A DNA stretch of 64,000 nucleotides from sequence record ON529855.1. The stretch is one strand, 5' to 3'. This document shows positions 1 through 60,345 of the stretch, piece by piece (position 1 is the stretch's first letter; the number at the start of each line of letters is the position of its first letter). The translations under genes were made by a program, and so were the position numbers. The notes under the pieces were generated by a model that ran no database searches, was not told where the DNA came from, and worked only from the letters and a program-made list of their open reading frames with translations.

Positions 1-8
1 TCCTGGGG

Positions 9-356
9 ATGTCGTGCCGGGGGACGGTGCGCGAGAAGTTCCACAACGTGGAGGCGCTGCTGGCGATGCGCGGGCTTAGCTACGGCCACGCGTGGACGGA
101 TGAAAACCGCACCTTCGGCGCGCTGTTCGCCCACTTGCTTCGGACCTATCAGCCGGACCAACGCCGCCACAGCCTGTCGATCTCGCCCGATCGACCTGTC
201 GCAACCTACACCTGCCACGACACCTATACGGCGGATTCCTCGGGGATCGCCTACGGCAAAGGGGTGAGCGCGACCGCGCCCCTGGCGCCGGTGATCTGGA
301 CCGTATCGATCAGCCACGACGTCCTGCATGATGTCGCCCTGTCGCTGCGCGCCTAA
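9..356 (+). CDS. hypothetical protein, probably the 3' end of a gene starting before the window
   Basis: Frame is open from base 3 and is followed by a terminator hairpin. Confidence 0.6.
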   Translation: MSCRGTVREKFHNVEALLAMRGLSYGHAWTDENRTFGALFAHLLRTYQPDQRRHSLSISPDRPVATYTCHDTYTADSSGIAYGKGVSATAPLAPVIWTVSISHDVLHDVALSLRA

Positions 357-374
357 TCCCTCAAGACGCCCAAC

Positions 375-412
375 AAAAAGGCCCTGCCCGTTCCCAGGTC
401 AGGGCCTTTATT
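375..412. terminator. bidirectional intrinsic terminator
   Basis: AAGGCCCTG(378-386)/CAGGGCCTT(400-408) stem with T/A tracts on both sides, between convergent genes. Confidence 0.75.
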
Positions 413-431
413 AGCAGTCGAGCCGCCTATA

Positions 432-1055
432 TTAGACGCCGTAGCCCGGCTCAAGCGCGCGCCGCATGTTCTGGCGCGCCTGCACTTCCAGCGGCTTGAA
501 CTGCTCGGTGAAGAAGATCGACGGTTGCTCCAGGGTGTGCTGGAGAAAGGCGCGACGCCCCTTCTCATAGGCGTCGGGGTCCAGCCCGCCCGACAGGAAC
601 TCCAGCTTCAGGTTCTCGCTGTTGCGGTCGTATTCGTCAGGGTCGGCCGCCAGCGGCGCCATGTCCAGGTCGACCATGTGGCGGATCATGTGGCGCACCG
701 ACGGGTCGTCATGCGGGAACTCGTCCGGATTGTGATTGATCGTCACCAGGATCAGCGCCTCGGCGATCTCCGGCCGAACGAACAGGCCCTTCGCGCGCCA
801 CGCCTCCAGGCTCTGGCGCTCGTTCCACCCCTTCTCGCGTCCGATCTGGTAGACGCAGTCGTGCGCGGCCACGGCGGTGCGGAAGATCACCTCCAGGTAG
901 GCCGGGAAGTAGGGCTTGCGGTAGCCGAGGACGCGCAGACCGCGCGTGGCGCCGCTGTCGTGCATCTCCAGCATCTCCAGGACGTGGAAGACGCTGTGGT
1001 AGCGGCGGTGCGGCTCGTCGTAGAGGCGCAGGAGTTCGAGTTGGGTGAGGTTCAT
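432..1055 (-). CDS. HD-superfamily metal-dependent phosphohydrolase (COG4339-like)
   Basis: Motifs YDEPHRRYHSVFHV, AAHDCVY, HMVDLDMAPLA and Y..GR..FL. Confidence 0.85.
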   Translation of the reverse strand: MNLTQLELLRLYDEPHRRYHSVFHVLEMLEMHDSGATRGLRVLGYRKPYFPAYLEVIFRTAVAAHDCVYQIGREKGWNERQSLEAWRAKGLFVRPEIAEALILVTINHNPDEFPHDDPSVRHMIRHMVDLDMAPLAADPDEYDRNSENLKLEFLSGGLDPDAYEKGRRAFLQHTLEQPSIFFTEQFKPLEVQARQNMRRALEPGYGV

Positions 1056-1067
1056 GTGGGCCTGCGG

Positions 1068-1301
1068 TTACCGGTTGAGCGAGAGGCGTCCCGCATGGAA
1101 CGCCCGGATCGGGTTGAGCCCGTCGTCCAGAGGCTGGAACGCCTTCCACAGGTCGTTGCGCCAGGGCTTGGTCAGGGCGAGGATGCGGTCGCGTTCGGCG
1201 CCCTCCAGCACTTCGCCGGTGTCGGGATCGACGACATAGAAGTCGTGCGTCATCAGCCGACGGAAGGCGTCGCACATCTGTTCGGAGGGGTTGGACCGCA
1301 T
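1068..1301 (-). CDS. hypothetical protein
   Basis: Fits operon geometry; TTGACA at 1330-1335 upstream. Confidence 0.6.
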   Translation of the reverse strand: MRSNPSEQMCDAFRRLMTHDFYVVDPDTGEVLEGAERDRILALTKPWRNDLWKAFQPLDDGLNPIRAFHAGRLSLNR

Positions 1302-1350
1302 AGCTTCACCTTGCGCATGCCGCCACGAATGTCAAGGATACCGACAATGC

Positions 1351-1377
1351 AAAACGCCCCCGGCGAACCGGGGGCGT
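1351..1377 (-). terminator. intrinsic terminator ending the 6S-like RNA
   Basis: ACGCCCCCGG-TTCG-CCGGGGGCGT followed by TTT on the minus strand. Confidence 0.85.
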
Positions 1378-1558
1378 CAGGGTGGCGTGGAATAAACGAC
1401 ACGATCCGAAAAGGGTCCGGGCTCCACTCCCCCGTTAGCTGTTCGGTCGGCTCACCGTAAGGCCCGACGGTGATCGTCGCCGGGTTGCAGTCCTACCCCC
1501 GGCTGGCTGGGCTTAATCCAGGAACCGAGGCCCCTAGTTGCTGCGCCGCTATGCCTGA
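1377..1558 (-). ncRNA. candidate 6S (SsrS)-like RNA
   Basis: No credible ORF; TTGACT upstream and terminator downstream; rod fold with large central bubble; blocks CUAGGGGCC, GUUCCUG, AGCUAAC, GGACCCU recalled from alphaproteobacterial 6S RNAs (not searched). Confidence 0.6.
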
Positions 1559-1584
1559 GCATGGTGCCTGAATAGGCGTAAAAG

Positions 1585-4500
1585 TCAAGCTTTCAGCGCC
1601 GCCTTGCGCATCCGGGCCGCCAGAGGATCGTCGGCGCCGCGAGGCTCGACGCCGTCCGGCAGCACGCTATAGGCGACGAACGGATTGCGCCGGTGCGCCC
1701 CGACCTTGATCATCGACAGCACGGTCTTCTCGCGCAGGACCAGGTAGCAGGGTTCGTCCCGAAACCAGACCTCATAGCGCCGACGTTTCGACATCAGCCG
1801 GGAAACATCGCCGAGCGCTGTTCCGGCGTCAGGCGCGGACTCGGCAGGCGTGTCCGTAGACGTGTGGCGATCCGCCGGGCCAGGTCATAGTCGGCCTCCT
1901 CCAGGAACTCGGGGGTCACGTCTTCCAGCGCGTTGAACCACTGGCGCAGCAGGTCGATCTCTTCGTCGCTGAAAATCACAGCTTCACAATCCCCTCGCAG
2001 GTGCGGGTGTAATAGAGCGCGCCCTGGACGGCCGGGTGCTGGTAGTAGGAGAAGCCGCAGCGGCAGACGACGTCGCCGCCGGCGCGCGGCACGCCGACCT
2101 CGTCGATGAAGAGGCGGTCCGCCTCGGCCAGAAGGGCGGGCGCGTTGCCGTTCTGGTCATAGCCCAGGCTCTCGCGCATGGTGTCGGGGATGCCGAACAA
2201 GCGCTTGTCGCGCCGGGCCTCGATCTCCTTGCACAGGTCGCTGTAGGCTTTGATGATCCACAGCGACGCGTCGCGTTGGGCGCTCGGGTCGCCCTCGTAG
2301 TAGGCGATGACTGGGTTCATCTCGTTGAGGTAAACAGTCCACCCCGGCCCTTTCGCCCTGGTCCCCTCGACCTGGACACCGTAGATGTCCCCTTGATACC
2401 TGCGCAGGACGGTCCTCAACAGGTCCCCGCCGGACCCAGGCTCCATCTCCACCACGCCTTCCGGCAGGAACTTCGCCCGCCGCTCGCGCGCTGTCGTCAT
2501 CCGTATCGTCCTTCATCTTCACGCCGACGCGGCATGTCATGATCTTCGCGACGGTCCTCGAAGACCTCGATCGCCCGCGTCAGGCGCTCTCGCACATGCT
2601 GCCGCCGCGCGTCTTTCCTGATCTTCGGCAGTTCATCCAGCGCCAGGCGCAGGGCGTCCTCGATCATGTCGCCGTAGTCGTCGTCGATGATCACGCGGGG
2701 TCCGCCTTCGGCAGCGAATCCACGATGACGTGCCCCGCGACGTCGAGCCGCAGGCCTTGACCGTCCCCCGCGAACTCGCCCGCCAACTGCTGGGCCGCGC
2801 CGGACGGATCAGGCTTGTGCCAGACCTGCCAGCCGCCGGCGCGGGTGCAGGTGATCTCGACATTGTAGGGCAGGTCGAAGATCGACGTGCGCTCCATGTC
2901 CTCGGTCGTCAGGTGCAGGTCGTGATATGAGGGCGCCTCGGTCACCGCTTGACCTCGAAGGTCGTGCCGTTCGGGCTCTGGAGGATTTCGCCGTAGAGCG
3001 GCACGACGTCGAACACCTCGGTCGAGCCGTCGGCCCAGCCCTTCGCCCCGCGCAGGTCCCGCGTTTGCAGCAGGCGCAGGTGCGCTTCGCCGATGTCGAA
3101 GTCGTGGAAGATCGTGCCGTGGTGGGGCGCTCGGGTCCAGGTCGACGGCGTCATGTAATAACGGACCTGGACGGCGCCGTCGGGCGCAGTCTTGGTCGAG
3201 CGCAGGACGTAGCAGTTCTCTTCCAGCAGGGTGATCTTGCTCACAGTCCGGCCGCCTGGCGCGCCGCCTTGATGTCGCCGATGCGCACCGAGACCTGATT
3301 GAGCATGACCCGGTCATTGTCCTTCAGCCCGTGCCAATCCCCGTCGCTCGGCCCGCCGTAATACCCGGCAGCGGTCTTGGCGACCTGATCCAAGACGCCA
3401 AGACGCACGAACGCCGCGCTCAACAGATCACGGGCGTGCCCGCCTAGTCCGTGCGGCGCCAGGGCGTCGGCCTCGTCCAGGGCCAGTATGGCACTGATGC
3501 TGCCCAGGAGGTTGGCGTTGTCGCCCCGGAAGGTGTCGGTGATTTCGGTCATGGCTTATCCAATACGGAAGACGATGCGTTCGACGCCGAGCGCCCGCAT
3601 CTGGTGAAGGTCAGAGAAGTAGGCCTCGCCCAGGTGTTCGCGCACCGACATGGACACGCCGGCGTCAGGCGGCCGCTGATTGACGAAGGTCTGATCGTAG
3701 TCGAACGCCAGCATCTCCTCCAGCGTCAGCCAGGACTTGACCCCGTCCCCGAGATCGTAGACGTCGGCCCAGGCGGTCCAGCGGGCGAACCCGCCCATCT
3801 CGTAGGGCGGTTCGTCGGGCCAGTCGGCGGGCAGGTGCCGGGGCTCTGCGATGCTGGGCGCGGCCGCGTAGTTGCGTTGGTTCGCCAGGACGCCGAAGAT
3901 GTCATAGGCGCCCCATTCCGGATCGAACGTGATCGGCTCCCAGACCCCGGCGCCGTTACGGCGTTGTGCGACCAGTTTGAGAGAGGCGCTCACGACACCA
4001 TATCCGCAAGCACCGTCTGCGCTTTCCTGTATTCGATCTCCAGGAGCCCGGCGATGTGGGCCTCAGGATCGTATTGAAGGGCGAAGTCCGGGTGGAACCA
4101 GAACCGGGCATGGTTGGAAATCCCGTCCGGCTCGCGGTAGGTCCAGAGCCCGCCATGGCCCTGCATCAGTCCTTCCGACAGGCTGTAGCCGGGGCGCCGC
4201 GTGATGCCGTCGAAATGCCCGCCGTCGATGTAGCCGGGTGTCGCCGCCCCGCCGAACGCAGCGTAGATGGCCTGGAACATGAGACGTTCCTTTTCGGTGG
4301 CGTAGCGGATCATGCGGCGGCCTCCCGCGCCAGGAACCGACGCCGAGCCTCGCGCGCCTTCATCCCGCACTCGGTCGTGATGGAGCCGAACGGCTCACCG
4401 ACGCCCTCCAGGCAGGCGTCCTCGTCGTTGGCGTAGCGCGCCAGCGCTTCATCGACCAGGGCCAGTTCGGCCTCCAGAGCCGCGATATGTTGGGCGGCGT

Positions 4501-4597
4501 CCTTGACCACGGCCGGTCCGCGCCAGTTATCGCAGCCCAGCTTGCCCGACTTGTCGAGGAAGTAGGCGGCGCGGGGTTTGATCAGATCAGGACCCAT
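1585..4597 (-). CDS. run of 10 small coupled hypothetical phage genes
   Basis: 1585-1794, 1794-1979, 1976-2500, 2497-2694, 2691-2945, 2942-3244, 3241-3552, 3556-3993, 3990-4313, 4310-4597; mostly ATGA/GTGA stop-start overlaps. Confidence 0.7.
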
Positions 4598-5294
4598 AGT
4601 CGTCCCCCAGCTTGATTTCCAGGTTGGCGTACAGGTCCTCGGCGGCGGCCTTGAACCATTCATGTCCGGGCCGGAAGGCGTTGAAGTCGATCTCCGACCC
4701 GGTCTCGCGAGGCTGGAGCGCGGCGTTGTGCCAGTTGTTCGGATCGATGCCGGCCTTGCGCGCCAGGGCGAAAGAGATTTGCCGGATGGCGGCGGGACGT
4801 TTGACCATGGAGCCGTGCTCCAGCGCCGACACCATCACCTCGACCAGATCGACCAGAGCCATGACCACCGAAGGATCGGCCTCGGCGGCGAAGGCGTTCT
4901 CTTCATGCCCGTCGAAGTTGGCGATCCAGTCACCGTTCTTGTCGGCCAGATAGCCTGCCTCGTTCCCATAGAGCGTGCGGGTGCGTTCGGTATGCTGCCA
5001 AGGGGTTGGCGACAGTTCCTGGGCGTCCTGGGCGGCCGCCCGCAAGCGGCGCAGGCGCGCCCGGTCGATCACGGTGTCGTCGGGTTTGTCCGCTGCGGGC
5101 GCGTAGCCGACCTGACGGGCGGCCGCCGGCCCCAGCACCAGGGCGTAGTGGCGCGCACAGACATAGGCCGTCAGATTGTGCCGGGAGGGGTGGGGGTCGT
5201 CGTGCGGGATTTCCTCGCCGATCTTGGCGACGGCGGGCGCGCCGCAGCGGCAGGTCTCGCCCTCGCAGGTGCTGGAGATGAAGGGCGCGCTCAC
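4587..5294 (-). CDS. Ead/Ea22-like domain protein with N-terminal Cys/His motif
   Basis: SPTPW...ENAFAAEADPSVVMALVDLVE matches the Ead/Ea22 pattern; GTG start overlaps the upstream stop. Confidence 0.6.
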   Translation of the reverse strand: MSAPFISSTCEGETCRCGAPAVAKIGEEIPHDDPHPSRHNLTAYVCARHYALVLGPAAARQVGYAPAADKPDDTVIDRARLRRLRAAAQDAQELSPTPWQHTERTRTLYGNEAGYLADKNGDWIANFDGHEENAFAAEADPSVVMALVDLVEVMVSALEHGSMVKRPAAIRQISFALARKAGIDPNNWHNAALQPRETGSEIDFNAFRPGHEWFKAAAEDLYANLEIKLGDDYGS

Positions 5295-6524
5295 AGTTCC
5301 AGCCCCGCGTCGAACAGCACCGTCTTCGCGCGCTCGATTTCGGGCGCGTCTTCCTGGCCCTCGGCCAGCGTGCCTTCGCCGACCGCCCAGTCCATCGTCG
5401 GGTAGATGCTTTCCCACGCGGCGCCCCAGTCGTCGCCTTCGCCGGCGGCGCGCGCCATCTCCATGGCCCACTGCGCCATAGGCAGGACGCCTTGCAGGGC
5501 CAGGGCGACTTCACTCGGCGCGGGCACGCCTTTGCTCCAGCCTTCCAGCGCCAGGGCGTTGCCGCGCACGCGTTCGATCAGGGTGGTGTAGGTCGAGGCG
5601 AGCGCACCCGTCTCCTCGGCGTCGAAGCCTTGCAGGAAGACGTGCAGGTCGCACAGGTCGTTGAAGGTTTCTCGGACGCACTCCGCCTGCACCGCGATGA
5701 CGGCGCGTGCGCGCTCCAGCGACAGGTCGGTCGTGATGCCCAGGAACTTCGCCTTCTCGGCCCCCTCGGCGTCGAGGATTTCCCAAGCGAGGGGGTCGAT
5801 GATGCGGGCGATTCGCTCGGTCGGGGTCATGGTTGCGCGGCCTTCGTGATGTCGTTGCTGCTGGCGGCGTGGAGACGCGGCGCCAGGACGTCTTTGATGG
5901 CGTCGTGAATGATGTAGCGGCTTGCTTCGTTGAAACCCGTGCTGTCCCCATAACAATGGGTCTGGTTGGCGCAGACCTGGATTCCCCATGCGCCGTTCGG
6001 CCACCAGATCGCCAGAGAACCGTCGAGCCGGGTGGCGGTGTGTGGGGTGATGGCCCAGCGTTCAGGGCGGTCACGGATGTCGCGGGCGACCGCCACGGCG
6101 GCGGGGTCAGGCTTAAGCCAGAAGGGGTAGATCATACCCTGGTTCGAGGCGAAAAGGGCGAGACCCGCCACCAACCCAGCCAGACTAAGGAGGGCGAAGG
6201 CCCCCGCGAGGGGCGTTCCTGGCGTGCGGGAAGTCTGGTCCGGCTTCATGCGGCGTCCTGACGAATCATGGCGGCAGCGCGCCGATAGATGGTGTCGTGC
6301 GGCGCGCCTTCATGCGCGGTGCGGTCGATGGTGTCGGCGATGTAGTCGAGGATGGCAGCGACGGCGTGGCGCTCTTCAGGGGCGTCATGGTCGTTCGCCA
6401 GAAGCGGCAGCGCGCGGCGGTAGACGTTGGTGGCGCGATAACGCACGTCCATCTGGAGCGCCTTGAAGATGAAGACTTCGGCGATGTCGCCGCAGCGCTG
6501 CGGCGTCACATAGACTGGCGTCAC
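5291..6524 (-). CDS. three hypothetical genes, one with an N-terminal TM helix
   Basis: 5291-5830, 5827-6249 (TM AFALLSLAGLVAGLALFA), 6246-6524. Confidence 0.7.
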
Positions 6525-23063: not shown

Positions 23064-23593
23064 CAGGAGGGGCGAAGCTGGCTCCGCCGCATCTCGTCGA
23101 TCCCCTTCGCCAGGGCGTAGTTGGAATAGGCGTGGTCCCCGGTGATCTCGGCGTCGACGGCTTCGGCGAACCAGGCCGGCATGTTGACGCCGTGGTTCTC
23201 GTCCGGCAGTTCGACCTCCAGGATCATCAGGTGGCGCAGGGCGGGGTGATCGAACATGTCGAACTCCAGCGTCAGGTCGCCGTGCGGGATCGACCAACGC
23301 GTCTTCTCGATGCAGGCGCCTTTTGTGTGGTGGATCGCCAGGTTCAGGTAGGTCATCCCGTCGATCTCGAACTCGATCTCATGGCTGGCGAAGGCCGAAC
23401 CTTCGACGGGCCGCTTCATCGTCAGGTGATAGCGCGGGTTGAACAGCTTGCACGAGGTCTGGCGGATGCGCACGATCCAGTCGCCCGTCCCTTGGACGTA
23501 GGCCTGGGTGATCTTCACCACACGGGCGGCGTCCAGGACGGCTTCCGGCGGCAACGACTTCAGTCGGAACCGGCGTTCGATCTCTACGCTCAT
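23063..23593 (-). CDS. CYTH-domain triphosphatase/cyclase family protein
   Basis: VEIERRF (ExExK-like), ITQAY, VRIR, EIEFEI, IEKTR, EFDMF, LEVEL. Confidence 0.9.
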   Translation of the reverse strand: MSVEIERRFRLKSLPPEAVLDAARVVKITQAYVQGTGDWIVRIRQTSCKLFNPRYHLTMKRPVEGSAFASHEIEFEIDGMTYLNLAIHHTKGACIEKTRWSIPHGDLTLEFDMFDHPALRHLMILEVELPDENHGVNMPAWFAEAVDAEITGDHAYSNYALAKGIDEMRRSQLRPS

Positions 23594-24306
23594 GCCGGCG
23601 CTCCGACGCTGTAGGCGGCTTCCTGCATCCGGCGAAGGGCCTGCGGCCGATATGGGACTTCAGCCCGCACAACATCCCGCGCGGCGTCCGACGGCTTGAA
23701 CGTCACATGGGAGCCCTGGGGCGACCAAACCGCCCGCACCGGATAGACGAGGCCAGCCTGAACGGCGCCGGCGTACTCGTTGTGAATGAACGGCTCGTGG
23801 GTCCCGAACTCGCCGCCGCGCACCGGCAGCAACAAGCGGGCCACCCGCCGGTTCACCACCATCGGCTTAAAGGCCCATCCGCCCCGCTCGACCACTTGCC
23901 GGAAGGTGTAGACTTGGTCTGGATCGCCCTCCAGGGTCTTTTCGCAGGCGTAGAGACGCCCCTTCAGGGTCACTTCCCATACGACGTCCTGGCCCTGCGC
24001 ATCCTGTTCGCACGGCCGCAGGCGGCCGTCGGCGACCGCCGTCACGACCAGAGCGCGCAACGCCGGGTCTTCCCGCATCGGCGTGCGTCTCGCCTCGCCC
24101 AGCCAACTATACCGCAGGGTGTCGGCGCCGCTGTCGGCGGTGATGACCATGGCGCCGGCGCGGGCGACCGCCGCCCACATGGCGTCGTCCTCCATCTGGG
24201 CGCTCTCGGGGTCCATGCCTTGCGGCGCGGGCGCGATCCCAGCGACGGCCGGCAATCCGACCAGGGCGGCGAGCGCGGTGAAGACGGTGCGTCGGTTCAG
24301 GTTCAT
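23590..24306 (-). CDS. hypothetical protein with twin-arginine-like leader
   Basis: MNLNRRTVFTALAALVGLPAVAG. Confidence 0.6.
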   Translation of the reverse strand: MNLNRRTVFTALAALVGLPAVAGIAPAPQGMDPESAQMEDDAMWAAVARAGAMVITADSGADTLRYSWLGEARRTPMREDPALRALVVTAVADGRLRPCEQDAQGQDVVWEVTLKGRLYACEKTLEGDPDQVYTFRQVVERGGWAFKPMVVNRRVARLLLPVRGGEFGTHEPFIHNEYAGAVQAGLVYPVRAVWSPQGSHVTFKPSDAARDVVRAEVPYRPQALRRMQEAAYSVGAPA

Positions 24307-24389
24307 GCCGCTTTTCTGCCTTGTCGATTTTTTCGTGTCAACCGCAACGGCGCCGGTTGACAGCAATCCCGGCACATGCGAGAAGGACA

Positions 24390-24857
24390 CCTCGGCGGCG
24401 CGGTCCCAGGGCAGCGTCGTCGGGCGATCTCGACCGGCACACGGGCTTGGGAAGATCAGAGGAATAGATGGGGAACCACAGCAGCGCTCCGGCGGGCTGC
24501 CCGATCACCGCGCTATCCTTGCGGACCCCTCAGGGGATAGGCTCTGACGCCGCAAAGATGTCGAGAGGACGGACCCTGCTGAACGGCGCTGTAACGCCGC
24601 CTCGGTAGGAACAAGGTCGAGCCGTAGCGCCCTTCGGGCGCCGCATCGACTGGACCCCGCCCATTACCAGTATCGTAGGTGGCTAAGCGTTCGCCTCCCC
24701 CGTCCGGGACATGTACCGGCCGGACCGAGAGGTATTCGCGAGGCGAGCACGCCAGGGTTACGTCACCGAAGCCGGCTCACCCGCCCGGCGCGATCGAGGG
24801 TCCATGGCCCTCCTTACCAAACCCCCGTCGGCTCGCGCCGGCGGGGGTCTCTTCTTG
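24390..24857 (+). ncRNA. candidate large structured ncRNA of about 460 nt
   Basis: No credible ORF of 60 aa or more; TTGACA at 24357; multiple hairpins; plus-strand terminator at 24821-24856. Confidence 0.45.
24821..24856 (+). terminator. intrinsic terminator
   Basis: ACCCCCGTCGGC-TCGC-GCCGGCGGGGGT then CTCTTCTT; the T-G pair is valid only on plus. Confidence 0.7.
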
Positions 24858-24864
24858 AGGGCCT

Positions 24865-25083
24865 ATGCCGTACCAGATCAGAATCACCGCCGCCGACTGC
24901 GAAACCCTCTCGGGCCAGACAGGCCTCAAGGGGATGATCTCAGGCTTGCGCGCCATGAAGGCCTGGGCCGAGGAACATACACCGGGATGGACCTACATCG
25001 CGGGGCTCCAGCGGTTCCAATTCCAGACGGCGGAGGACCTGGATCGGTTCGAAGCGACGTTCAAAAGCGCTCCGGAGGCCTGA
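24865..25083 (+). CDS. hypothetical protein
   Basis: GAGGG RBS; natural amino acid composition. Confidence 0.6.
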   Translation: MPYQIRITAADCETLSGQTGLKGMISGLRAMKAWAEEHTPGWTYIAGLQRFQFQTAEDLDRFEATFKSAPEA

Positions 25084-25360
25084 CGAGTCTTCAAGGCTGT
25101 ATCGGGCGCCGACCTGGAGTTGCCAGGTCTCGGGATGATCAGGTCTGATTTTCCTGGTGTTTCCTGCGCCGTATCCCAACATTTTGTTAAGACTTCAAGA
25201 GGCGTTTCCAGGCGGACTCGCTGCGCTCCTGTCGGGCGGGGCTTCCCTGCCGCCGGGGGATGGCGGGGCCTCGCGGCCGGAGCGTAATCGGGGGGCGTCA
25301 TGCGCTCGCACAGGGAAGTGTCCTGCCAAGGACAGCCCTTTGTGGCACACTTGGGGCGAA

Positions 25361-25612
25361 ACGAAAAGCCCCGCCGGCGAACCGACGGGGCTTACCCACA
25401 AGGGAAGGTCCTAAGACCTCGCTCGATGCCTCTTGCCTTACGGCTATCCCGCATGACGCGTGGACCCCTTACAGGGCGGGTGGACGCTTTTGCCCCGAAG
25501 AGCGCAACCGATCTATCGTCCGAAACAGGGTGAGACCTCGGCGGCCGCACGAGGTCTCGGGCGTTCTCAAGCCGGCGTTCCGATCCTCGTACTGACCGGC
25601 GATTGAACAGCC
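25361..25612 (-). ncRNA. candidate structured ncRNA of about 250 nt with own promoter and terminator
   Basis: TTGACT-17-CATACT promoter (25644-25616), UUCG and GUAA tetraloop hairpins, terminator at 25361-25393. Confidence 0.65.
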
Positions 25613-25640
25613 GGGAGTATGGCCCAGCTTGACTGTAAAG

Positions 25641-25985
25641 TCAAGACCGCGCGGTGAGGGAGCAGGCCATGGAGTTTGGATCGTAGTCGTTGGATCGGTA
25701 GCCCTCCGCGAACAGGTAGGTCTGGCCGCCGGTCTGGAAGGTGTAGACGACGCAATGTTCGCCCGTGAAGACCCGCGTCAGGCCGACGGCGGCGCGTTCC
25801 TGGGCGGCCTTGTCGGCGGCGAAGCGCCGTCGTTCCTCGGCGGTCATCGGCCGGGTCTGATTCGGCCCCACGTCGACGAGGGTCGGGACGTGCTCGACCG
25901 GCGGCGCCGGGCTCTGCGACGGCGCATTGCAGGCGGCCGTCAGCAGCATGGCGGCGGCGGCGAGGATGAGTGTGGTCTTGGTCAT
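25641..25985 (-). CDS. predicted lipoprotein, paralog of 26431-26739
   Basis: Lipobox LTAAC; C-terminal C-x4-F-x3-GQTYL-x-A...C. Confidence 0.75.
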   Translation of the reverse strand: MTKTTLILAAAAMLLTAACNAPSQSPAPPVEHVPTLVDVGPNQTRPMTAEERRRFAADKAAQERAAVGLTRVFTGEHCVVYTFQTGGQTYLFAEGYRSNDYDPNSMACSLTARS

Positions 25986-37300: not shown

Positions 37301-39462
37301 GATCCCAGGACGCGATCACAACGTCGGGCACGCGGCGGTAGGATCGAGGCGGGACTCCGCCCATGCCGTCGCCGCCGGTCATTCCACCAGCTTCCGGTCG
37401 ATCCAGTAGACGTCGTCGTCGCGCGACGACGTCGCCTTGATGACGTAGCCGATCAGGTCTCCGTTGTGGCGCCAGTCGACGCGCGGCGGCAGGCCCGGCA
37501 CGGGATTCTCGAAGGCGAGCCCGCCATGGCGCATCTCGTAGCGGCGCACGGCGTCATAGAAGGCGCGCTTGCCGATGCGGCGGTAGTCGGAACGGATCAT
37601 GGTCTGGGTCACGAGCGCGTCGCCTGCTCGACCATGACGTCCATGGTGCAGTCGTCGCACAGCGTCTCGCCGTCGACGACGTTCTCGTTGCCCAGGGTTC
37701 CGCCGCGCACGCCGTGACAGCGTTTGCAGTTGTCAGGCCCCGGCGCCACGGACAGGCGGCTCGCCAGGCCGCCGGCGTTCTCCAGGTCGGTGTGGATCGT
37801 GTCGAACAGGGCGCGCTCGCCGTCCTGGAGGTGCAGGGCGTCCTCCACCTGGTAGAGGTCATCACGCGCGCCCTGGATCAGGGTCGCGGCCTCGGCCGCC
37901 ATGGCGGCGTGCTTCTCCAGCGGCTCCAGGGTTCGGGCGATCCGCATCGACATGATCAGGTCCGACTGGGCCTTGTCCCGCAGGTCGGCCGGCACGCGGT
38001 CTTCCTGAAGGGCGTTTTCCAGATCAACCGCCCATTGGCGGTGATGGGTGACGATCTCGGCCAGGGTCAGCGGCGGGACCTTGTCCTCGGCGCGCCCCGG
38101 CAGATAGCCCAGTTGGGTCTGGATGCCGTCCGGATAGCCCAACGCCTTGTCGCGGGCCGACATGCGCTCCGCCGGCTGCGGGTTCTTGGGATCATGCAGC
38201 GGACGCGCGACGGCGTCCTCCAGCTTGCGGAAGACGTCGACGAAGTCGCGCGTCTCCGACCACAGCAGAATCTGACCCACGGAGACGGGCAGGCCGTCGA
38301 TGTATTGCACCTCGTGGAGGCCGTATTCCGGGCCGTCCTCGGTCCGGTATTCCACCACCCGGAAGCCCCAGGTGCGGACCGATTCCACTTCATCAGCCAT
38401 GCAGATACATCTCCTTGTCGTCGTAGCGGCTCCAATGGAGCCCGGCGTAGACCGCCAGCGCGAGAGGGATCGCCACCACCAGAAGAACCAGCGCCGCCGG
38501 GATCATCCACAGCAGGTTGAGGGCTTCGAGATCGGTCACGGTCGTCTCCCTTATCATTTTGTTACGAGCACGCTAGTCTGTGCCGTCAATCCTGACAAGA
38601 GGCGCCAGCGATTTTTAAGTCCAGCCGATCGCCTTGCTGAGTTCGGGCGTCCAGTCGCCCAGGGCGCGGAACCGTGCCTGGATGCGTTCCAGGATGGCGA
38701 TCTCGGCGTCGAGGACCTCATGAAAGTCGTCGCGGCCCAGGGCATGGTTGGCGGGGGACGGCAGATGCCGCAGCCAGCGGCCCAACTGCATCTTGTCAGC
38801 GGTCTCGACCTGTTCGGGCGTCGGATAGAGGTTCATGCGCACGCGCGCCATTCCGCGTGCTCGCGCAGGATCGCCGCCACTTCCCGCTCCTGCGGCGTTT
38901 CCACATAGAGGGCGTCATGGCGCCGGCGCTCGACCCAGGATGCGGGCGGCCGGTAGGCCGCCAGCGCCTTGATGAAGAAGGGTGCGATCTCGTCCCACTC
39001 CATATAACCGTCCAGCGGATGGACGCTGGTGCGGCGATGCTCGGCGTGGGGATGCTTGTTGACGCCGGCGTCGATCGCGCCGTCCCGACTATGCGGGTGC
39101 AGGCCGATGCGAACGCGGGCGCCGCGATACCGGGCGTAGAAGACCGTGCCGTCGGACAGTCGCCCTTCCCACTGACTGGGGCAGACCCGACAGGTCTGGA
39201 CGACCTCGGCGAACACGTCGGGGTCCAGGCGGAAGTCGCGCACGTCGAAGCGCGTCCAACTGAAGCCGAGGTGCTTGTGGATCGCCCGGCTGCGGCGGCC
39301 GGGCCGGACCTGGGCGGTCATCGAATGGAATTGGGCGAAAACCGAGCGCGCCAACAGGGCGGCGGGCGCATGGCGCCAGGCCCGAGAAGGTTCGTTTCGA
39401 ATCAGCGCGCGCTGCCCGCGCAGGTGCGGGATCGGGCCGACATAGGTGGCGACAACGATCAT
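34349..39462 (-). CDS. eleven hypothetical genes, several with Cys-rich zinc motifs
   Basis: 34349-34663, 34660-35283, 35258-35977 (CxxCxGxG twice), 35974-36588, 36578-37180, 37170-37382, 37379-37612, 37609-38400, 38393-38539 (48-aa TM), 38615-38851, 38833-39462. Confidence 0.7.
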
Positions 39463-39959
39463 GGCTTGGCTTTCAAATGACGCTCGACGCTCGGCGGCAC
39501 GAGCCAGGACATATCCTCGCCGATGCGCGCGAGTTCACGGGCCATGCTGGAGGAGACGTGCAGGTAGTCCGACTGGCAGATCAGATAGACCATCGGCAGG
39601 TCGGGGGCGATTCGTTCCATGACGCCGTGAATACCGAACTCGTCGTTGAAATCGCTGGCCTGACGGAAGGCGCGCACGAGGTGGGTCGCTTCCACGGACC
39701 GGGCGGCGGCCGCCAGGCTGCCTTCGAAGGCGAGCGTAAAGATGCGCGACGCGTCCTCGGGGAACTGCGCCTGGCATGCCTCGTAGGCCATAAAGGACCG
39801 TTCTTTGGGATCGAACAGCCCCTGTTTGGCGGCGTTGCTGCCCACCGCCACATACAGAACGTCAAAGACGGTCAGGGCCTGCCGGATCACGTCGAGGTGC
39901 CCCCGCGTGATCGGATCAAACGACCCTGCGTAAAAGCCGATTTTCGGCCCTTCACTCAC
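39459..39959 (-). CDS. coaD: phosphopantetheine adenylyltransferase (CoaD/PPAT)
   Basis: YAGSFDPITRGHLDVI (HxGH), VAVGSN..K..LF, VR.FR..SDF..E, HVSSSMARELA. Confidence 0.93.
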   Translation of the reverse strand: MSEGPKIGFYAGSFDPITRGHLDVIRQALTVFDVLYVAVGSNAAKQGLFDPKERSFMAYEACQAQFPEDASRIFTLAFEGSLAAAARSVEATHLVRAFRQASDFNDEFGIHGVMERIAPDLPMVYLICQSDYLHVSSSMARELARIGEDMSWLVPPSVERHLKAKP

Positions 39960-40381
39960 GGATGCAGGTCCAACGGCGCCACGGCGCGTTCGATGGCGAT
40001 CTTCGGGCCGAAGATGTAGGCGCAGGTGTCCAGCGGGAACAGATGCACCACCGAGCCGTCCAGCAGCGGGTAGGACGGATCGTTGACCACGGCGCAGGGG
40101 AAGCCCAGGCGGGTGGCGATCGCCAGCGCCTCGTTCATCTGCCGGTTGTCGCAGCCCAACGTCAGCACGGTGCCGAAACCGCGCGACTCGGCCCAGTCCC
40201 GAAGCCAGTTCTGTTGCGTGACCGTCCAGGTCTGGCGATCCTTAAGCGCCATCTGGGTGCCGGCGTGGTGCGACTGGGCATGACCCTTGCCCGCGTTCAT
40301 CGACGCCATGTCGGTGCGCATCAGCAGGTAGACGCACAGCAGTTCCTCGGCGCTCTCGGCCGGGGTTGGCAAATCAGTCAA
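39956..40381 (-). CDS. peptidyl-tRNA hydrolase type 2 (PTH2)-like
   Basis: YLLMRTDM.SMNAGKGHAQSHHA...W...G...VL...V.DP...T.....GP. Confidence 0.75.
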   Translation of the reverse strand: MTDLPTPAESAEELLCVYLLMRTDMASMNAGKGHAQSHHAGTQMALKDRQTWTVTQQNWLRDWAESRGFGTVLTLGCDNRQMNEALAIATRLGFPCAVVNDPSYPLLDGSVVHLFPLDTCAYIFGPKIAIERAVAPLDLHP

Positions 40382-43300
40382 GCTTCATGTCCTTGCAGGG
40401 CGGGGAAGGCGTCGATCAACGCGTTCGCCAGTCGGGTCTTCGATCCTCCGAGAGGACCAGGGTAGAAGTGGTGGTAGACGACCTGTTCCACGGTCTCGAC
40501 CAGAGCCGGTCCCGCGTTGGCCGGGGGACGCATCAGGGCGGTGATGACCGCCTCACGGTTCTCCAGCACAAAGAGCGCCAGAACTTCGCGGGCGGAGGGG
40601 TCTTCAGAAACCGACGCCGTGTCGCACGCCGACATCAACGCCCGCAACTTTTCGACCCGTTTCAGGTCAATCGGCATCGGGATGCTCCTGGGCGCCCGGC
40701 GTCTTCGGCAACAGCAGCCACAGGGTCGGCTCCGGGCCGTCCCAGGGAATCAGTTGATCGGTATCGGCGCGATACCATGACCACTCGTATTCATGGCCGG
40801 GATGATGGTCGACGGAGCCGACCGCCGCCCGCCACTCCTCCGGCGTGCCCCAGCGCGTGACCATGCCGGACAACGGCGTCGCCCAGTCGGGTCCGCAGAA
40901 CAGCACATCCGCCTGCTGAGCCACGGGGCAGGGCGCGCCGTCAATCAACCGGTTCCAGGTCGTGGCGCCGCCGTAGAGGCGGTCGCGGGCGTCCTGCACG
41001 AACTCCGAACACTGACGCCCCGAGAAGGGCGCGGCCGGGTGCTCGCGCAGATGCGCCGCGATCGTCGTCATCGCGTCGTAGTCGTGCTGGTTCTGATCAA
41101 ACCGCCCCGCCAAGTCTCGGGCGATGGCGACCTGATCCACCGCAGGCGAGAGCCTTACGTTGACCATGGGCGTGTCGAGGTTCATGCGGTCCTGAATGCT
41201 CATGCGCACACGCACTGGCCCAGCAGCAGGCGCGCGCGCTGGGCGCGTTCGGCGGCACTCGGAATCGCCTGGCGCTTGCCGTGCTCCTGGCGGCGGCGCG
41301 GCGGGAGGACGGGGCTGTGGACAAAGGCTTCAAAAGCCTCGTCGCGGCCGGGGATGGTGTAGGTCGTCGAGTGCAATAGGTCCTCCTCAAATCGTCGGAG
41401 AGGGCGTAAAGGAACGATCAGCGACTGTCAACCATCCTGACTCACTTTCGGACGCCGTCGCGCCTCTTTCTCAGCCCGCCGCCATTCACTGATGTCACGG
41501 GCGATCTCGATGGTGTTCTCGGCGCAAACCTTCTGGCCCACGACCTTGACCAGGGCCTCGACCTCGTGGCGCTTGAGGTCCAGAGCGCACTTCATCGCCC
41601 GCACGAATCGCTCGAATTCCATACTGGACCGCTCACTCGCCACATAGAGGCGGATGATGATCTCGATCTCCTCGGCGCTGGCGGTCGGCTTCAGGCGGGC
41701 GACGCAATCGAGTCGGTAACACTCTTCGATGTAGCGCCCAAGCAGGGACAGGTTGAAGCGCCCGTCCAGGCCGATGTCGTGGTCGTCTTCCTCCCAGACG
41801 TGCGGCGCGCGCGACGGCAGGATCGCGTCGCGGTAAAGGGCGAACGCGCGGCGCAGGACTTCGGGCGTGATATGGGTCGGGTCAAGCAGGTTCAACGACG
41901 CGCCTCCAGAAGCCGCAGCGCTTCTTCGAGCGCCTGCGAGCGTTTGACAAAAACCTTGTCGCTGATTTCTCCCGCGAGGTAGGCGTCGTGAGCCTGGCGC
42001 AGGCGCGTCAGGAGGAGACGACGGACGCGGTCGACGTTCGCCTGACGATACCACCGCCAGCCGAACCACGCCCCGACCACCAGGAGGATCAACAGTTCAG
42101 CCATGTTCTCCTCCTGTTCTACGTCAAAAACGGTCGTCTAGTTTGTGAAGCCCTCTGATTCGGCCCTACGGTCATTGTAGGCCTGCATCCAGGGATTCGC
42201 CGCGTAACGCCAGGTCCATGGAGTTTCGCCTGGCTTCGCCCCGTTGAAGGCGCACAACCATTTATAGGCGCGCGCTGACAACGGGTAGTTGTAAGCTTCA
42301 CCGGTCCGCCCGCCAAGCCTAAAACTGGCGTGAATCTGTTCCGGCGTCAGATTTGCGGGCTCGTCACGACCCACCTTGATCTTGATCTCCGGAGCATGAA
42401 CGTCCGATGACTCCGGCGGCTCCACGCTCCACCCGGCTTTTCGCAGCAGCTTGATGGCCGCCTTGAGGTCTGCATCCATGTCGCCCGCCTCAATTCGGTT
42501 CAATATGAGTAGCCATCATCGACCTCGGTCAGGGGATGGGACTCCTCCAGCATCTCCAGAGCGCGTGCGCGCCAACGCGCCCGCTCCTGCCGCTCCAGTT
42601 CCGCCCACGGGGCGTAAGAGGCGGTGGCGACAACGGCGGCGCGAACCTGATTATCCTGGGTCGACAGCCCGCCGCTGTACCAGGACGCCCTGCCCTTGTC
42701 GAAAGACCGGCAATCGCTCTCGTAAAGGGCGATCGCCACCATTTCGATGTCTGCCCGTGTCGGCGCCTCGGTCATTGGACGACGTCCGGCGCCGGGACGA
42801 TAGGCTGGGTCACGGCCGCATACTGGTTCATGAAGGCCGACACCAGGGAGGCGTCCTCCAGGGTGGCGTGGAAGGTGTAGACGCCCAGTCGCCAACGATC
42901 CTTGTCCGCCTTGATCTCAGCGGTCACGACGCCGTCGCCGGCCTCGGGCACGCCGGTGCGCACCCACGTCAACACGTCTTCCTTGATCCGGTCCCCCAGC
43001 CAGCGCGCCTCGCCTTCGGTGACGATGTCCTCAATCACCATGATCGCCAGGATGTGATCGTTCGGCCCCTTCATGACGCCGACCTTGATAGACTGGTCGG
43101 CGACGGTGAAGTGTTCCGCGTCGTCGAGGTGCTTGGTCAGATCATGTGTCAGCATTGCGGGTGCTCCCCGCCAGGCGGGCGAACCAGCCGGGCTTCTTGA
43201 CGTCGGGCGCCGGCGCTGCGGCGGGTTGAGGATGGTCGGGCGCCCCGAAGGCGCGGGGGCTGAGCCCGCCGACCGTGACCGGCTTCACCGTAGGTTTGTG

Positions 43301-49100: not shown

Positions 49101-50204
49101 GACCTCGGCCAGGGTCGCGCTGGTGTCACGATAGGGGTCGTTGGTCAGCATCGCCGGCGCGTACCCGCCCCTGGCGTAGACTTCATCGGCGCGCTGACGC
49201 ATCATCTGCGCCGTGTCCAGCTTGGCCTGATTGACCGCGACCGTCAGCCGCGACTTGGCCTTCAGGCGCTCGGACTCGGCAATGCGTTCGTGCAGACGTT
49301 GTTGGCTCGCCAACAGTTCAGCCATGGCGACCGGGGTCACGACGCCCTCGGGGGTCTGGTTCGGGTTGGGAGTCTGCATGGGAAAGCCCTCCTTGTTGTC
49401 GTCTAGGTGGGCTGTAAAGGAATGATTCGAGGTTGTCAAGCGGCCACGGCCGCCGGGCGGCGTTTTCTGGGCGGGCCTTTGATCCGCGCCGGTTTCAGCC
49501 TCGCCGGCGCGGTCTGCAAGCCGGCGAACTTGCCGTTGCGGGTGACGCCCACGGGATCGACGCCGGCGATATACCAGCGCTTGTCCTTCTCGTAGATGTA
49601 GGCGATCCCGTCAGGGTCTCTCATGTTATAGCACCGAAACTCGCCGTCCCACCCGCTCGGGAGCGGGACGATATAGACCGCCGCCGGCGTCCCGCGCGGC
49701 GGCTTTACGCTGTAATCCATCATCCCTTGAGGGCATCCTGCATCACGTTGCGCACCCACTGCGCGGTTTCCTGGGTCTGGTAGCGCGCGATGACGACCTC
49801 GCCCTGCGCGCTGATTTCGATGACGCCGAGACGCCCCTGGGGGCCGGCGGGCGGCAGGGGGCGGACCTCGTAGCGGGTGGTCGGGCGCTTGCGCGGTGCG
49901 GCGAGCCTCGCGTCGATGCGCTCGACCATGCGCTTCATGGCCTTCTTCTTTTCAGCCTTCTTGCCCATCAGTCGGCACGCTCATAGTCGACGAAGGTCGC
50001 GCCGCCGGTCAGGTCGTCGATATAGCCTTCAGGGCCGTTTTCGCAGCGGGCGGCGATCTCGTCGATCAGGGCGGTCCAGTCGGCGCCGCGTTTCCTGGCC
50101 TCGCGCTGGGCCACCTCGCGGAAGCGGGCGATACAGGCCTCGGGCGTGTCCGCGAACACCTCGATCTTGAGGTAGGCGCGCATATTGGCGATCAGTCGAT
50201 ACAT
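46186..50204 (-). CDS. nine hypothetical genes
   Basis: 46186-46872, 46884-47684, 47746-48249, 48246-48563, 48529-48879, 48879-49379, 49436-49759, 49720-49968, 49968-50204. Confidence 0.7.
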
Positions 50205-50274
50205 GGGGTCCTCCCTGTTTGTCGTCAGCCTTTCTCCTAGAGGGCCGAGTGACGGTTGTCAACGCTCTCGCGCC

Positions 50275-50305
50275 AAAGAAAAAGCGGCGGGATTGCTCCC
50301 GCCGC
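50275..50305 (-). terminator. intrinsic terminator closing the hfa-like operon
   Basis: GCGGCGGGA-GCAA-TCCCGCCGC then TTTTTCTTT. Confidence 0.88.
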
Positions 50306-50331
50306 CTCTCATTCAGCCTTGATCCGAAGAC

Positions 50332-51327
50332 TTACGGACGGGTGCCGGCCGTCACGGTCACGGTGTTGCCGATAGCGGTGGCTCCCACCGTGGCGCTGCC
50401 GCCGATGAAGCTGTTGTTCAGGTTCATCGTGGCGATTTGCGGCGTATTCAGCCCTTGCGCGCTGATGTTGGCGAGGACGCCGCCGGCGCCGTTGATGTTG
50501 ACCATGTTACCGAACGCCCCGGCGTTGCCCGTCAGCGAGGAGCCGAACGACGCCGAAGAGATGTTGGTGGTCGCCGTCTGGGTCGCGCCCGGATAGCCGC
50601 CAGTCCCGAAACCATTGGTCTGGAGGACCGTGGCGTTGACGAAACCGTCGGCCGACACGTCAAGGGCCGTGCCAACCGCTTGAGAGATCAGGCCGGCGGA
50701 GCCGCCGACGCTGCCGTTCGAGTAGTTCAGCGCCGCGTTTTGGACTGCACCGGAGTTCACCAGCAGGGGCACGTTGCCGCCATTGATCAGGACGTCACGG
50801 TCCGCATCAATGTTGATCGCGGCGCCCACTGCGCCAGAGACGCCATCCAGGCGACCATCCACGCGGGTCGAGCCCATGTTCAAGGTCGAGGATTGGTTGC
50901 CTTGGTTGACGATCGCGAAGTTCGAGTTGACCACCGCGTCGAACGCACGCACGTCGAGCGCCCCGCCCAGGGACTGAGCGCGCAGGTCAGCGCGATCGAT
51001 GGACGAGGAGTTGACGTTGAGCGTCGAGGTTTGCACGCCGCCATTCGCGATGTGCGCGCCGCCGATATAGGGGTTGTTGTAGTAGGCGGCATTGCCCGAA
51101 ATCGTGGCGGTTCCGAACGCCTCGACGTTCAGTGCCGAACCCACGGCCGCAGCTTGGCCCGTCAGCAGGTGATCGACACGGACGTTGGCGACATTGGCCG
51201 TGGCGGTTTGAGTGTTCGGCGAGTGGATGCCGAGGTTACTGCCGACGCGGACGTCGACCGACTGCGCCGAAGCGGCGCCGGCGAACAGGACGACCGAAGC
51301 GGCCGCCAGAAGGAAAGTCTTACGCAT
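50332..51327 (-). CDS. HfaD-like secreted beta-repeat (curlin/amyloid-like) protein
   Basis: Sec signal (ASA|Q); six Q-x-[AS]-T-x-N...A-x-G-x-x-[LV] repeats starting at Q40, Q99, Q145, Q196, Q250, Q297; ends ATAIGNTVTV; downstream of hfaB. Confidence 0.7.
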   Translation of the reverse strand: MRKTFLLAAASVVLFAGAASAQSVDVRVGSNLGIHSPNTQTATANVANVRVDHLLTGQAAAVGSALNVEAFGTATISGNAAYYNNPYIGGAHIANGGVQTSTLNVNSSSIDRADLRAQSLGGALDVRAFDAVVNSNFAIVNQGNQSSTLNMGSTRVDGRLDGVSGAVGAAINIDADRDVLINGGNVPLLVNSGAVQNAALNYSNGSVGGSAGLISQAVGTALDVSADGFVNATVLQTNGFGTGGYPGATQTATTNISSASFGSSLTGNAGAFGNMVNINGAGGVLANISAQGLNTPQIATMNLNNSFIGGSATVGATAIGNTVTVTAGTRP

Positions 51328-51476
51328 TGAGATATTCTCCCGTTGATGAATGGACGAGGCTCGAATGAGCCCCGCTTAATCCCGACCGCTGAACTGGGAG
51401 CGGTCGTCCCTCCCGCCGGGAAGCCCCGGAGGTTGGCGACGCGGTGACCCAGGGCCGCCGCGAATAGGGGTGCGGC

Positions 51477-52367
51477 TTAAGACCGGAAGCTGGCGTCGAC
51501 GAGCGGCGCGCAGTCGCGGAAGTAGTTGCCGTAGAGCGGGTTCAGCAGTTCCAGCGTGGCGTATTCCAGCGTGGCGCGGACGCCGAGTTGGAGCGGCTCC
51601 TGGCCCTGCTTGCCGGTGTTGATGTCCACCAGATAGTCGCCGAAGAAGCGGAACAGGCCGGCGCGGGTCTCGTAGCCGATGATCTGCTTCTGCACCGAGA
51701 CGGTCTTGACGACCTTCAGCGACTTGGTGTCGACCAGGCGCAGGTCCACCGCCGTGTTGATCACGTAGTAGCGCATGCCGGCCTCGAACAGGCTGACGCC
51801 CAGTTCGGCGCCGCCCGAGACGATGTCGTAGTTGACCTCGGTGATGCCGCCGACGATGTAGTAGTCGGAGCCCTGATACTGACCAGCGGTCAGGTTCAGG
51901 CGGCGCAGCGTGGCGGCCTGAGGGTTCGCGGGATCGTAGGCCGGGTCCTGGATCAGTTGGTTCTGGGTCAGGGTGGCTTCGTTGGAGGCGATGTCCATGT
52001 CGAAGCGCTCGACCTGTTCGATGCCGTCCAGCTTGCCCAGAGCCGACATGACCATGAGCGAGCCGCCCTGGGTGATGCGGAAGCCGCCTTCACTGGCCTC
52101 GTTCGAGAACTTGCCGGTGTAGTCGCGGATTTGGCCCACGGCGATGCGGTTCGGAACCACGCTTTGACGCGTCGCCTGGGCGAAGCATTGCATGGCGGGG
52201 TCCATCGGGCTGGAGTTCAGCGTCGGGCGGGTGCCGACCACGACCGGGGCCTGGCCTTGGGCGTTCAGAACCGGCGAGACGGGGGCGGTCGTTGAGGCGC
52301 AGGCAGCCGTCGACAGGGCCAGCACCGACAGCGCGGCCAGGGTGATGATGCGGTTCTTCATGCTCAA
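51477..52367 (-). CDS. hfaB: HfaB / CsgG-family outer-membrane secretion lipoprotein
   Basis: Lipobox STAAC; IAVGQIRDYTGK, ITQGGSLMVMSALGK, VERFD, GSDYYIVGGITEVNYDI, AVDLRLVDT, QKQIIG, EPLQLGVR. Confidence 0.9.
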   Translation of the reverse strand: MSMKNRIITLAALSVLALSTAACASTTAPVSPVLNAQGQAPVVVGTRPTLNSSPMDPAMQCFAQATRQSVVPNRIAVGQIRDYTGKFSNEASEGGFRITQGGSLMVMSALGKLDGIEQVERFDMDIASNEATLTQNQLIQDPAYDPANPQAATLRRLNLTAGQYQGSDYYIVGGITEVNYDIVSGGAELGVSLFEAGMRYYVINTAVDLRLVDTKSLKVVKTVSVQKQIIGYETRAGLFRFFGDYLVDINTGKQGQEPLQLGVRATLEYATLELLNPLYGNYFRDCAPLVDASFRS

Positions 52368-55643: not shown

Positions 55644-55695
55644 TCCATCTCTCCGTCGTTGTCTTGAGCGGTTGTAAAGGAATGTTCTGAGGCTG

Positions 55696-60322: not shown

Positions 60323-60345
60323 GGGTCAGTCCTTTTCTTGAGGCG

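Follow-up and report, generated by a model that had tools for sequence, protein, structure and literature searches.

What is encoded in a 283-nt gap that carries no annotated gene in an otherwise gene-dense part of a giant phage genome? The gap (1302-1584) lies in a 64,000-nucleotide stretch of DNA (the window), whose sequence is identical to that of Brevundimonas phage vB_BpoS-Domovoi (ON529855.1) from base 62001 onward; positions below are those of the window. Comparison with related phages led us to conclude that the gap probably contains an autonomous gene for a structured, trans-acting small RNA (sRNA) of ~200 nt, which belongs to a new sequence family and is not a 6S RNA. An initial annotation of this DNA had proposed a phage-encoded 6S-like RNA here. 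Its description of the locus was upheld, namely a phage non-coding RNA (ncRNA) read from the minus strand that has a -35 box of its own, ends in a UUCG terminator and contains two named hairpins, whereas the 6S identity was not, since the element did not match the Rfam 6S family (RF00013) and the proposed rod decays in related phages.

Domovoi, a siphovirus in the Dolichocephalovirinae with a genome of 352,705 bp, was obtained from sewage on B. pondensis. GenBank records no gene in the gap, and the annotation described in the genome paper consists of proteins and transfer RNAs (tRNAs) only, with no transfer-messenger RNA (tmRNA) reported (PMC10070969). The gap is flanked by a long, densely packed run of minus-strand genes, all of which are labelled hypothetical. 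Phage small RNAs are still poorly catalogued, and the annotation of giant phages is almost wholly a list of hypothetical proteins.

The open reading frames (ORFs) of the gap span only 31-49 codons and are not kept in related phages: the ATG at 1562 is replaced by ATA or CTC, and three 1-nt insertions or deletions shift the reading frames. The initial annotation had described a non-coding minus-strand unit of ~180 nt between a sequence at 1588 and a UUCG terminator, and both the boundaries of conservation described below and the lack of a conserved ORF bear this out.

Conservation and distribution of the element

BLAST searches found the element in seven giant B. pondensis phages. Five of them form the Domovoi group, in which the copies share 94-100% identity; Kikimora and Gurke, with genomes of 312-321 kb, make up the other clade, at 83-84% identity. 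The alignment used throughout comprised six distinct copies from the two clades, the Kabachok copy being identical to that of Domovoi. When the window was compared with Kikimora and Gurke using megablast, the element was the sole match within positions 1-6000 and the best of two within positions 1-25000. For comparison, the best coding stretches elsewhere in the window show 75-81% nucleotide identity between the clades, and the HD phosphohydrolase encoded near the element shows 59% protein identity.

The neighbourhood of the element is not shared. The proteins encoded upstream have no detectable similarity between the two clades, and the genes downstream of the element in Kikimora and Gurke are convergent, on the plus strand, so that both flanks differ from those in Domovoi. 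Conservation in seven phages, and as an island between unrelated flanks in two of them, is far beyond chance in comparative terms. Within the 181 positions of the body, substitutions are concentrated in the first hairpin (HP1, Table 1), outside which only ~14 of the 134 alignment columns vary. A second matching place in Kikimora and Gurke was considered as a paralogue and rejected, as Kikimora's own copy used as the query matched one place only.

More distant relatives were sought in two ways. Exact-pattern scans with the most conserved blocks, performed on IMG/VR, JGI metagenome contigs and one genome per GTDB species, returned either no match or single chance matches in coding sequence, one of them within an argS-like gene; such scans are a blunt tool for distant RNA homologues. 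A covariance model built from the six copies (R1) was searched against the window and against 40-kb portions of Brevundimonas phage Bajun and Caulobacter phage C1, and recovered the known copies and no credible new one. The R1 match at Bajun 38051-38223 on the minus strand (19.7 bits, rough E 0.012) crosses two plus-strand genes and the 65-nt spacer between them and was judged spurious. That region of Bajun contains about six genes (97-186 codons) with regular spacers of ~60 nt between them, and the spacers may themselves hold hairpins. As far as these searches reach, the family appears to be confined to the seven giant phages of B. pondensis.

Promoter, predicted transcript and terminator

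The sequence strings on which the initial annotation was built were all located on the minus strand where it had placed them, including TTGACTTTTA (1588-1579), UCAGG (1558-1554) and CCUGA (1381-1377), AGGGGCC (1535-1529) and GGACCCU (1418-1412), GGUUCC (1526-1521) and GGAGCC (1425-1420), and the hairpin strings GCCGGG/CCCGGC (1503-1479) and UCACCGU/ACGGUGA (1473-1452). The features of the locus are listed in Table 1.

Conservation runs from the block AAAGCTTGACTTT, which contains the -35 box, to the U tract of the terminator. This block is invariant in all six distinct copies, despite the unrelated upstream genes in the two clades. It is followed by a spacer of variable sequence and constant length and then by invariant G, C and A..AT positions, and the combination of an invariant TTGACT, a variable spacer of fixed length and an invariant block is the signature of a promoter. 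The -35 box fits the RpoD consensus of Caulobacter (-35, TTGaCgS; -10, GCtANAWC), and the putative -10 region matches it in part (PMC8144410). Three occurrences of the combined pattern were counted in the window, where 0.28 would be expected. Judging from the conservation pattern and the Caulobacter consensus, the promoter is likely of the host RpoD type.

Both the promoter and the terminator can be read on the minus strand only. In addition, the supported helices contain 11 alignment cells with G-U pairs; were the plus strand transcribed, these would become A-C mismatches, which indicates a minus-strand RNA. The terminator stem carries a single change, from C-G to U-G, in Papperlapapp. Several unrelated Rfam sRNA models match the terminator portion weakly, with partial and sub-threshold scores.

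A second promoter-like site lies between the terminator and the gene at 1068-1301, which starts at 1301. With this site of their own, the downstream genes for a 77-aa protein and the HD phosphohydrolase would not rely on read-through of the sRNA.

Table 1 Features of the sRNA locus in window coordinates.
Feature	Position	Strand	Description
-35 box	1583-1588	-	TTGACT; shares positions with the stop codon of the gene upstream, 1585-1794
-10 region	1560-1567	-	Putative; GCACCATG (GCATGATC in Kikimora), 14 nt past TTGACTT
Predicted transcript	1351-1556	-	~200-206 nt; predicted start 1556-1552, end in the U tract 1354-1351
HP1	1520-1535	-	AGGGGC-CUCG-GUUCCU; hypervariable sequence, kept structure; GGAGAU-UUCG-GUCUCC in Kikimora
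HP2	1479-1503	-	GCCGGG/CCCGGC with the 13-nt loop GGUAGGACUGCAA; present in all folds
HP3	1452-1473	-	UCACCGU/ACGGUGA with an 8-nt loop; seven invariant pairs, loop varies at two positions
P5	1403-1448	-	Long hairpin GACCGAACAG / CUUUUCGGAUC, distal stem CGGG/CCCG, apical loop GGAGUGGAG
3' tail	1382-1387	-	CGCCAC; alternative partners GCGGCG (1549-1544) or GUGG (1427-1424, P5 apical loop)
Intrinsic terminator	1351-1377	-	10-bp G+C stem, UUCG loop, U4 tail; from the minimum-energy fold
Second promoter-like site	1308-1336	-	CTTGACATT-N14-CAAGGT; pattern match, conserved in the Domovoi group

Secondary structure of the predicted RNA

Alignment of the six copies points to a series of local hairpins, with model energies of -44 to -58 kcal/mol across the copies. 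HP1 combines the most variable sequence with kept pairing: two of its pairs are changed on both sides, three more switch between G-C and G-U or between A-U and G-U, and 94% of the alignment cells remain paired. Both RNAalifold and all single-sequence folds paired AGGGGC locally with GUUCCU in this hairpin and not with GGACCCU, its partner in the proposed rod. P5 shows one double change from C-G to U-A, three G-U switches and one mismatch that becomes C-G in Kikimora, with 93% of cells paired. The two further hairpins named in the initial annotation, here HP2 and HP3, were found at the stated positions. The HP2 loop carries a single change, and the stems of both hairpins are invariant, so that covariation neither supports nor contradicts them. 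Taken together, the covariation evidence for the local hairpins is suggestive but not strong.

How the hairpins are held together allows two solutions. In the first, a closing stem (CAGG/CCUG and GGCG/CGCC) joins the ends of the RNA; 86% of its cells are paired, and four copies carry a C-A mismatch. In the second, the apical loop of P5 pairs with the 3' tail in a candidate pseudoknot, with 100% of cells paired and one double change from U-A to C-G. These good statistics are biased, as the pseudoknot was picked post hoc from an exhaustive scan, and all three relevant substitutions fall on one branch of the tree, so they do not discriminate between the two pairings. An extra helix, GACGA/UCGUU, which would close HP3 and P5 together, was energetically neutral and unsupported, and was left out of the model.

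Comparison with 6S RNA

6S RNA is a rod with a central bubble that mimics an open promoter; it binds the RNA polymerase holoenzyme carrying the primary sigma factor and templates a product RNA. If the phage RNA worked in this way, it would titrate the host RpoD holoenzyme off host and early promoters. Its length, ~180 nt ahead of the terminator and ~205 nt with it, is in the 6S range (~160-200 nt) and suits this idea, although length is not discriminating. The short end-to-end pairing of CAGG/CCUG and GGCG/CGCC is also possible, and the central helix of the rod has one compensatory pair (C-G to U-A, alignment columns 30/142).

Homology searches gave a different answer. No match to RF00013 was found in the whole window at the gathering threshold (46.4 bits), and none at E<=10 was found for 1200-1750 (551 nt) or 1340-1575 (236 nt), both searched with lax filters, or for the Kikimora copy, whereas E. 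coli ssrS, the positive control, scored 139.8 bits (E 1e-30) with the same tool. The initial annotation had also named four sequence blocks as occurring in this order in Rhodobacteraceae-type 6S RNAs. Three of the four vary among the phage copies: in Kikimora, CUAGGGGCC is changed to CUCGGAGAU, GUUCCUG to GUCUCCC and GGACCCU to AGAACCU. Blocks that vary in this way cannot be signatures of the 6S family.

The rod itself was lost when the relatives were aligned. Its central helices, AGGGGCC/GGACCCU and GGUUCC/GGAGCC, are paired in 82% of cells, compared with 93-94% for HP1 and P5. Three of the seven pairs of AGGGGCC/GGACCCU are broken in Kikimora and Gurke, and the energy of the rod model rises from about -44 kcal/mol in Domovoi to -20.8 kcal/mol in Kikimora and -15.4 kcal/mol in Gurke, a loss of more than 20 kcal/mol. 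Its pairings are replaced by a local hairpin that shows covariation. In an exhaustive scan, no helix present in every one of the six copies offered another long-range pairing of the 5' and 3' halves, and no extended complementarity between them was seen. The unpaired stretches CAGCAACU and GUGUCGUUUAUUCCA do adjoin the possible closing stem, but the distal flanking helix is unsupported, the closing stem competes with the loop-tail pairing, and its CAGG strand may partly precede the predicted transcription start. E. coli 6S RNA, used as a yardstick, folded into an obvious rod with a z score of -5.75, against +0.91 for the body of the phage RNA.

Since RF00013 is not matched, the rod is not conserved and a thermodynamic rod signal is absent, we reject membership of the 6S family. 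A decoy that mimics an open promoter is thus very improbable, and a 6S-like function served by a fold other than that of 6S, for which no evidence was seen, appears unlikely. The negative result matters, because the evidence says that the sRNA is not a phage 6S mimic, which to our knowledge would have been a first. It also holds a lesson: a rod that looks plausible on a single G+C-rich sequence dissolves after its relatives have been aligned.

Searches for other RNA families and for targets

All 4227 models of Rfam 15 were compared with the element, and only sub-threshold matches of <=17 bits were obtained, mostly to the terminator hairpin. No Rfam riboswitch family matched the element, and ARAGORN detected no tRNA and no tmRNA in the window. 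A resemblance of GUCCGGGCUCCA, read on the plus strand, to the CR-I region of RNase P was dropped, since it lies on the wrong strand, Rfam RNase P models did not match and the element is far too short. A role as a CsrA sponge was likewise dropped; we counted ~6 GGA motifs where ~3 would be expected, and Kikimora lacks two of these.

Pfam assigned no family to any of ten neighbouring proteins, which therefore suggest no partner protein. A search for antisense complementarity in the 64-kb window gave nothing above chance, with best matches of 11-12 nt (E>0.6). A 15-nt exact copy of the 3' tail of the sRNA, TTCCACGCCACCCTG, occurs at 42859-42873 on the minus strand inside the gene 42772-43155 (E 0.01 in the window). 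It has the same sense as the sRNA and is probably a chance match, not an antisense target.

Other conserved regions of the window

A second non-coding island was found at 24410-24590, in the unannotated gap 24306-24865. It shows 85.6% identity between the clades, and nothing else matches between them in 24300-25700. Five to six compensatory double-changed pairs occur among four sequences, and the consensus fold is better on the plus strand than on the minus strand (-58.4 vs -37.1 kcal/mol). The island lies ~275 nt upstream of the plus-strand gene 24865-25083, and its Kikimora counterpart ~340 nt upstream of a plus-oriented gene. No Rfam family matched it. This region may itself be a structured RNA or a leader, and its covariation is better than that of the sRNA described above.

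On the minus strand at ~25645-25360, in and next to the gap 25084-25640, the promoter-like motif CTTGACTTT of the main sRNA recurs at 25645-25617. Beyond it come ~230 nt in which no gene is annotated, and then a hairpin, AAGCCCCGUCGG-UUCG-CCGGCGGGGCUUUUCGUUU, at ~25393-25360. This unit, which is conserved within the Domovoi group only, may be a third small-RNA unit. An inverted repeat, GCTGTCAACCGG...CGGTTGACAC, is found at 24330-24400 (minus strand), a short distance upstream of the gene 23590-24306; its outer half-sites are conserved in Kikimora, and it looks like an operator or promoter region.

In the parts of the window at ~39459-40381 and 50001-64000, GenBank annotates a group of genes with roles connected to tRNA and translation, namely a peptidyl-tRNA hydrolase, a pantetheine-phosphate adenylyltransferase, a tRNA nucleotidyltransferase and a tRNA-His guanylyltransferase. 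The first two are among the few coding stretches with conservation at the nucleotide level between the two clades. The related phage Marchewka additionally encodes a methyltransferase of the large-subunit ribosomal RNA. The giant phages described in the genome paper carry 24-29 tRNA genes each (PMC10070969).

Mode of action and alternative explanations

We propose that the locus is a self-contained, moron-like unit. A host RpoD-type promoter (TTGACT, 16-nt spacer, CAnnAT) would drive a minus-strand transcript of ~200 nt that ends at the intrinsic terminator with the UUCG loop. The RNA would fold into the variable HP1, the invariant HP2 and HP3 and the long P5, without a 6S-type rod, and these hairpins would be held by the short closing stem or by pairing of the P5 loop with the 3' tail. 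It would then act in trans, not via a short seed but as a fold recognised by a protein or another macromolecule, for which it could be a decoy, a scaffold or a sensor. Outside HP1, the stems are no more invariant than the loops and joining strands, and the window yielded no antisense target; from this we infer a folded RNA that is recognised by a protein or other macromolecule. A hairpin that varies but stays paired, next to invariant loops and junctions, is the pattern of protein-bound or tertiary-folded RNAs, although our confidence in this particular mode is low.

Several points weigh against this proposal. The transcript is predicted and was recognised through conservation, and binding of a protein is argued from the conservation pattern alone. 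A simple promoter/terminator scan listed neither the promoter nor the terminator of the sRNA; the former was called because of its conservation pattern and the RpoD consensus, and the latter because of its fold and the terminator-type partial matches in Rfam. The single-sequence fold is no better than those of dinucleotide shuffles (z -1.20 for 246 nt and +0.91 for the 181-nt body). There are only three to four double-changed pairs, and 34 of 500 shuffles reach the observed covariation score of the hairpin model; the score of the model with the post hoc pseudoknot is reached by 1 of 500, a figure to be read with that choice in mind. With six distinct sequences from two clades and the changes on one branch, the covariation statistics are weak. 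The antisense search covered the 64-kb window and not the host genome or the rest of the phage. Finally, the identity of the island between unrelated flanks could stem from recent lateral transfer instead of constraint. The non-random placement of the substitutions, however, indicates that constraint is at work besides any such transfer.

Another explanation is that the locus has no RNA function. It would then be DNA that was exchanged recently, or it would serve as a signal at the DNA level (a promoter-terminator insulator, for instance, or a site bound by a protein), with hairpins that are incidental at 65% G+C. The unremarkable fold stability, the covariation on one branch and the different flanks, as expected of a laterally moved cassette, are consistent with this. 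It accounts poorly for substitutions that cluster in HP1 with pairing kept and that elsewhere lie in loops or are compensated, for the few variable columns outside HP1 and for a conserved block bounded exactly by promoter and terminator; moreover, the 17% divergence between the clades means that any transfer was not very recent. We regard it as the least probable of the explanations considered. Little credence can be given, too, to a cis-acting element without a role in trans, which would be either a leader, attenuator or riboswitch serving the HD phosphohydrolase gene and the gene of the 77-aa protein, or a structured untranslated region at the 3' end of the upstream operon. The layout in the Domovoi group, with a promoter, a structured RNA, a terminator and then genes on the same strand, would suit a leader, the 5' arm of the terminator could face competition from the CGGGGG stretches of HP2 and P5, and the sRNA always lies behind a minus-strand operon. 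Yet the RNA is conserved in Kikimora and Gurke, where the convergent downstream genes leave no target for regulation by read-through, and in Domovoi a separate promoter-like site precedes the next gene. The lack of a riboswitch match and the unrelated upstream genes of the two clades argue in the same direction.

A classical base-pairing sRNA, in which mRNAs of the host or the phage are bound by a conserved single-stranded stretch, such as GUGUCGUUUAUUC or the loop of HP2, and change in translation or stability as a result, is a more serious competitor. A stand-alone unit with a promoter and an intrinsic terminator is typical of most trans-acting sRNAs, and several invariant unpaired stretches are on offer. 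There are documented cases of sRNAs encoded by phages, and ncRNAs have been demonstrated for a jumbo phage (PMC8545117). Against it, complementarity in the window is at the level of chance, conservation is spread across nearly the whole molecule without focusing on a seed, and the U tail is short (4 U). We therefore consider base pairing unlikely.

The recognised fold proposed above leaves room for a bolder version, in which the phage produces the sRNA as a decoy or sensor whose structure represents a new class, and the sRNA forms, together with the island at 24410-24590, part of a small set of conserved structured RNAs. Such an RNA could be a functional analogue of 6S, capturing host RNA polymerase or another core host machine by its multi-hairpin fold, or it could be a stand-alone ligand-sensing RNA. 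We hold this version to be quite unlikely; if true, it would mean that structured RNAs are kept more strictly in giant Brevundimonas phages than the protein genes of the 64-kb window. Whichever way the RNA may act, the most conserved stretch in 25 kb of this 352-kb phage appears to be an unannotated RNA gene without an Rfam family.

Comparison with known systems

The sRNA resembles 6S RNA (SsrS, RF00013) in its similar length, as a candidate for a non-coding, stand-alone stable RNA and in having ends that can form a short stem. Unlike 6S RNA, it has no covariance-model match and lacks a conserved rod, and long helices on both sides of a putative central bubble are not supported. Its thermodynamic signal is weak, it carries an intrinsic terminator of its own, and it is phage-borne and, as far as the searches reach, found in seven phages only.

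Riboswitch and attenuator leaders share with the locus a multi-hairpin domain of ~180 nt directly before an intrinsic terminator, and the G-runs of the sRNA could pair with a terminator arm. They differ in that the element has no Rfam match, no co-oriented gene follows it in Kikimora and Gurke, and in Domovoi a promoter-like site of its own precedes the gene downstream.

Phage morons, known from the genomics of lambdoid phages, are autonomous cassettes of promoter, gene and terminator inserted between other genes. With its own predicted promoter and terminator and different neighbours in different genomes, the sRNA unit is similar to these, whereas its cargo would be a structured RNA and not a protein gene.

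Two ncRNA candidates of PhiKZ, for which a length of ~100 nt is quoted, were found by Grad-seq (PMC8545117). They too are small unannotated transcripts from intergenic gaps in a phage genome of >200 kb. They were found by expression, whereas the Domovoi sRNA, at ~200 nt, is known from its conservation, and no sequence relationship between them is expected. The predicted Domovoi transcript has the features of an autonomous phage sRNA gene in general, namely a promoter and a terminator of its own, no conserved ORF and conservation that is independent of its neighbours. Thus, the kind of element, a phage-encoded small structured RNA, is already known, and what is new is the sequence family.

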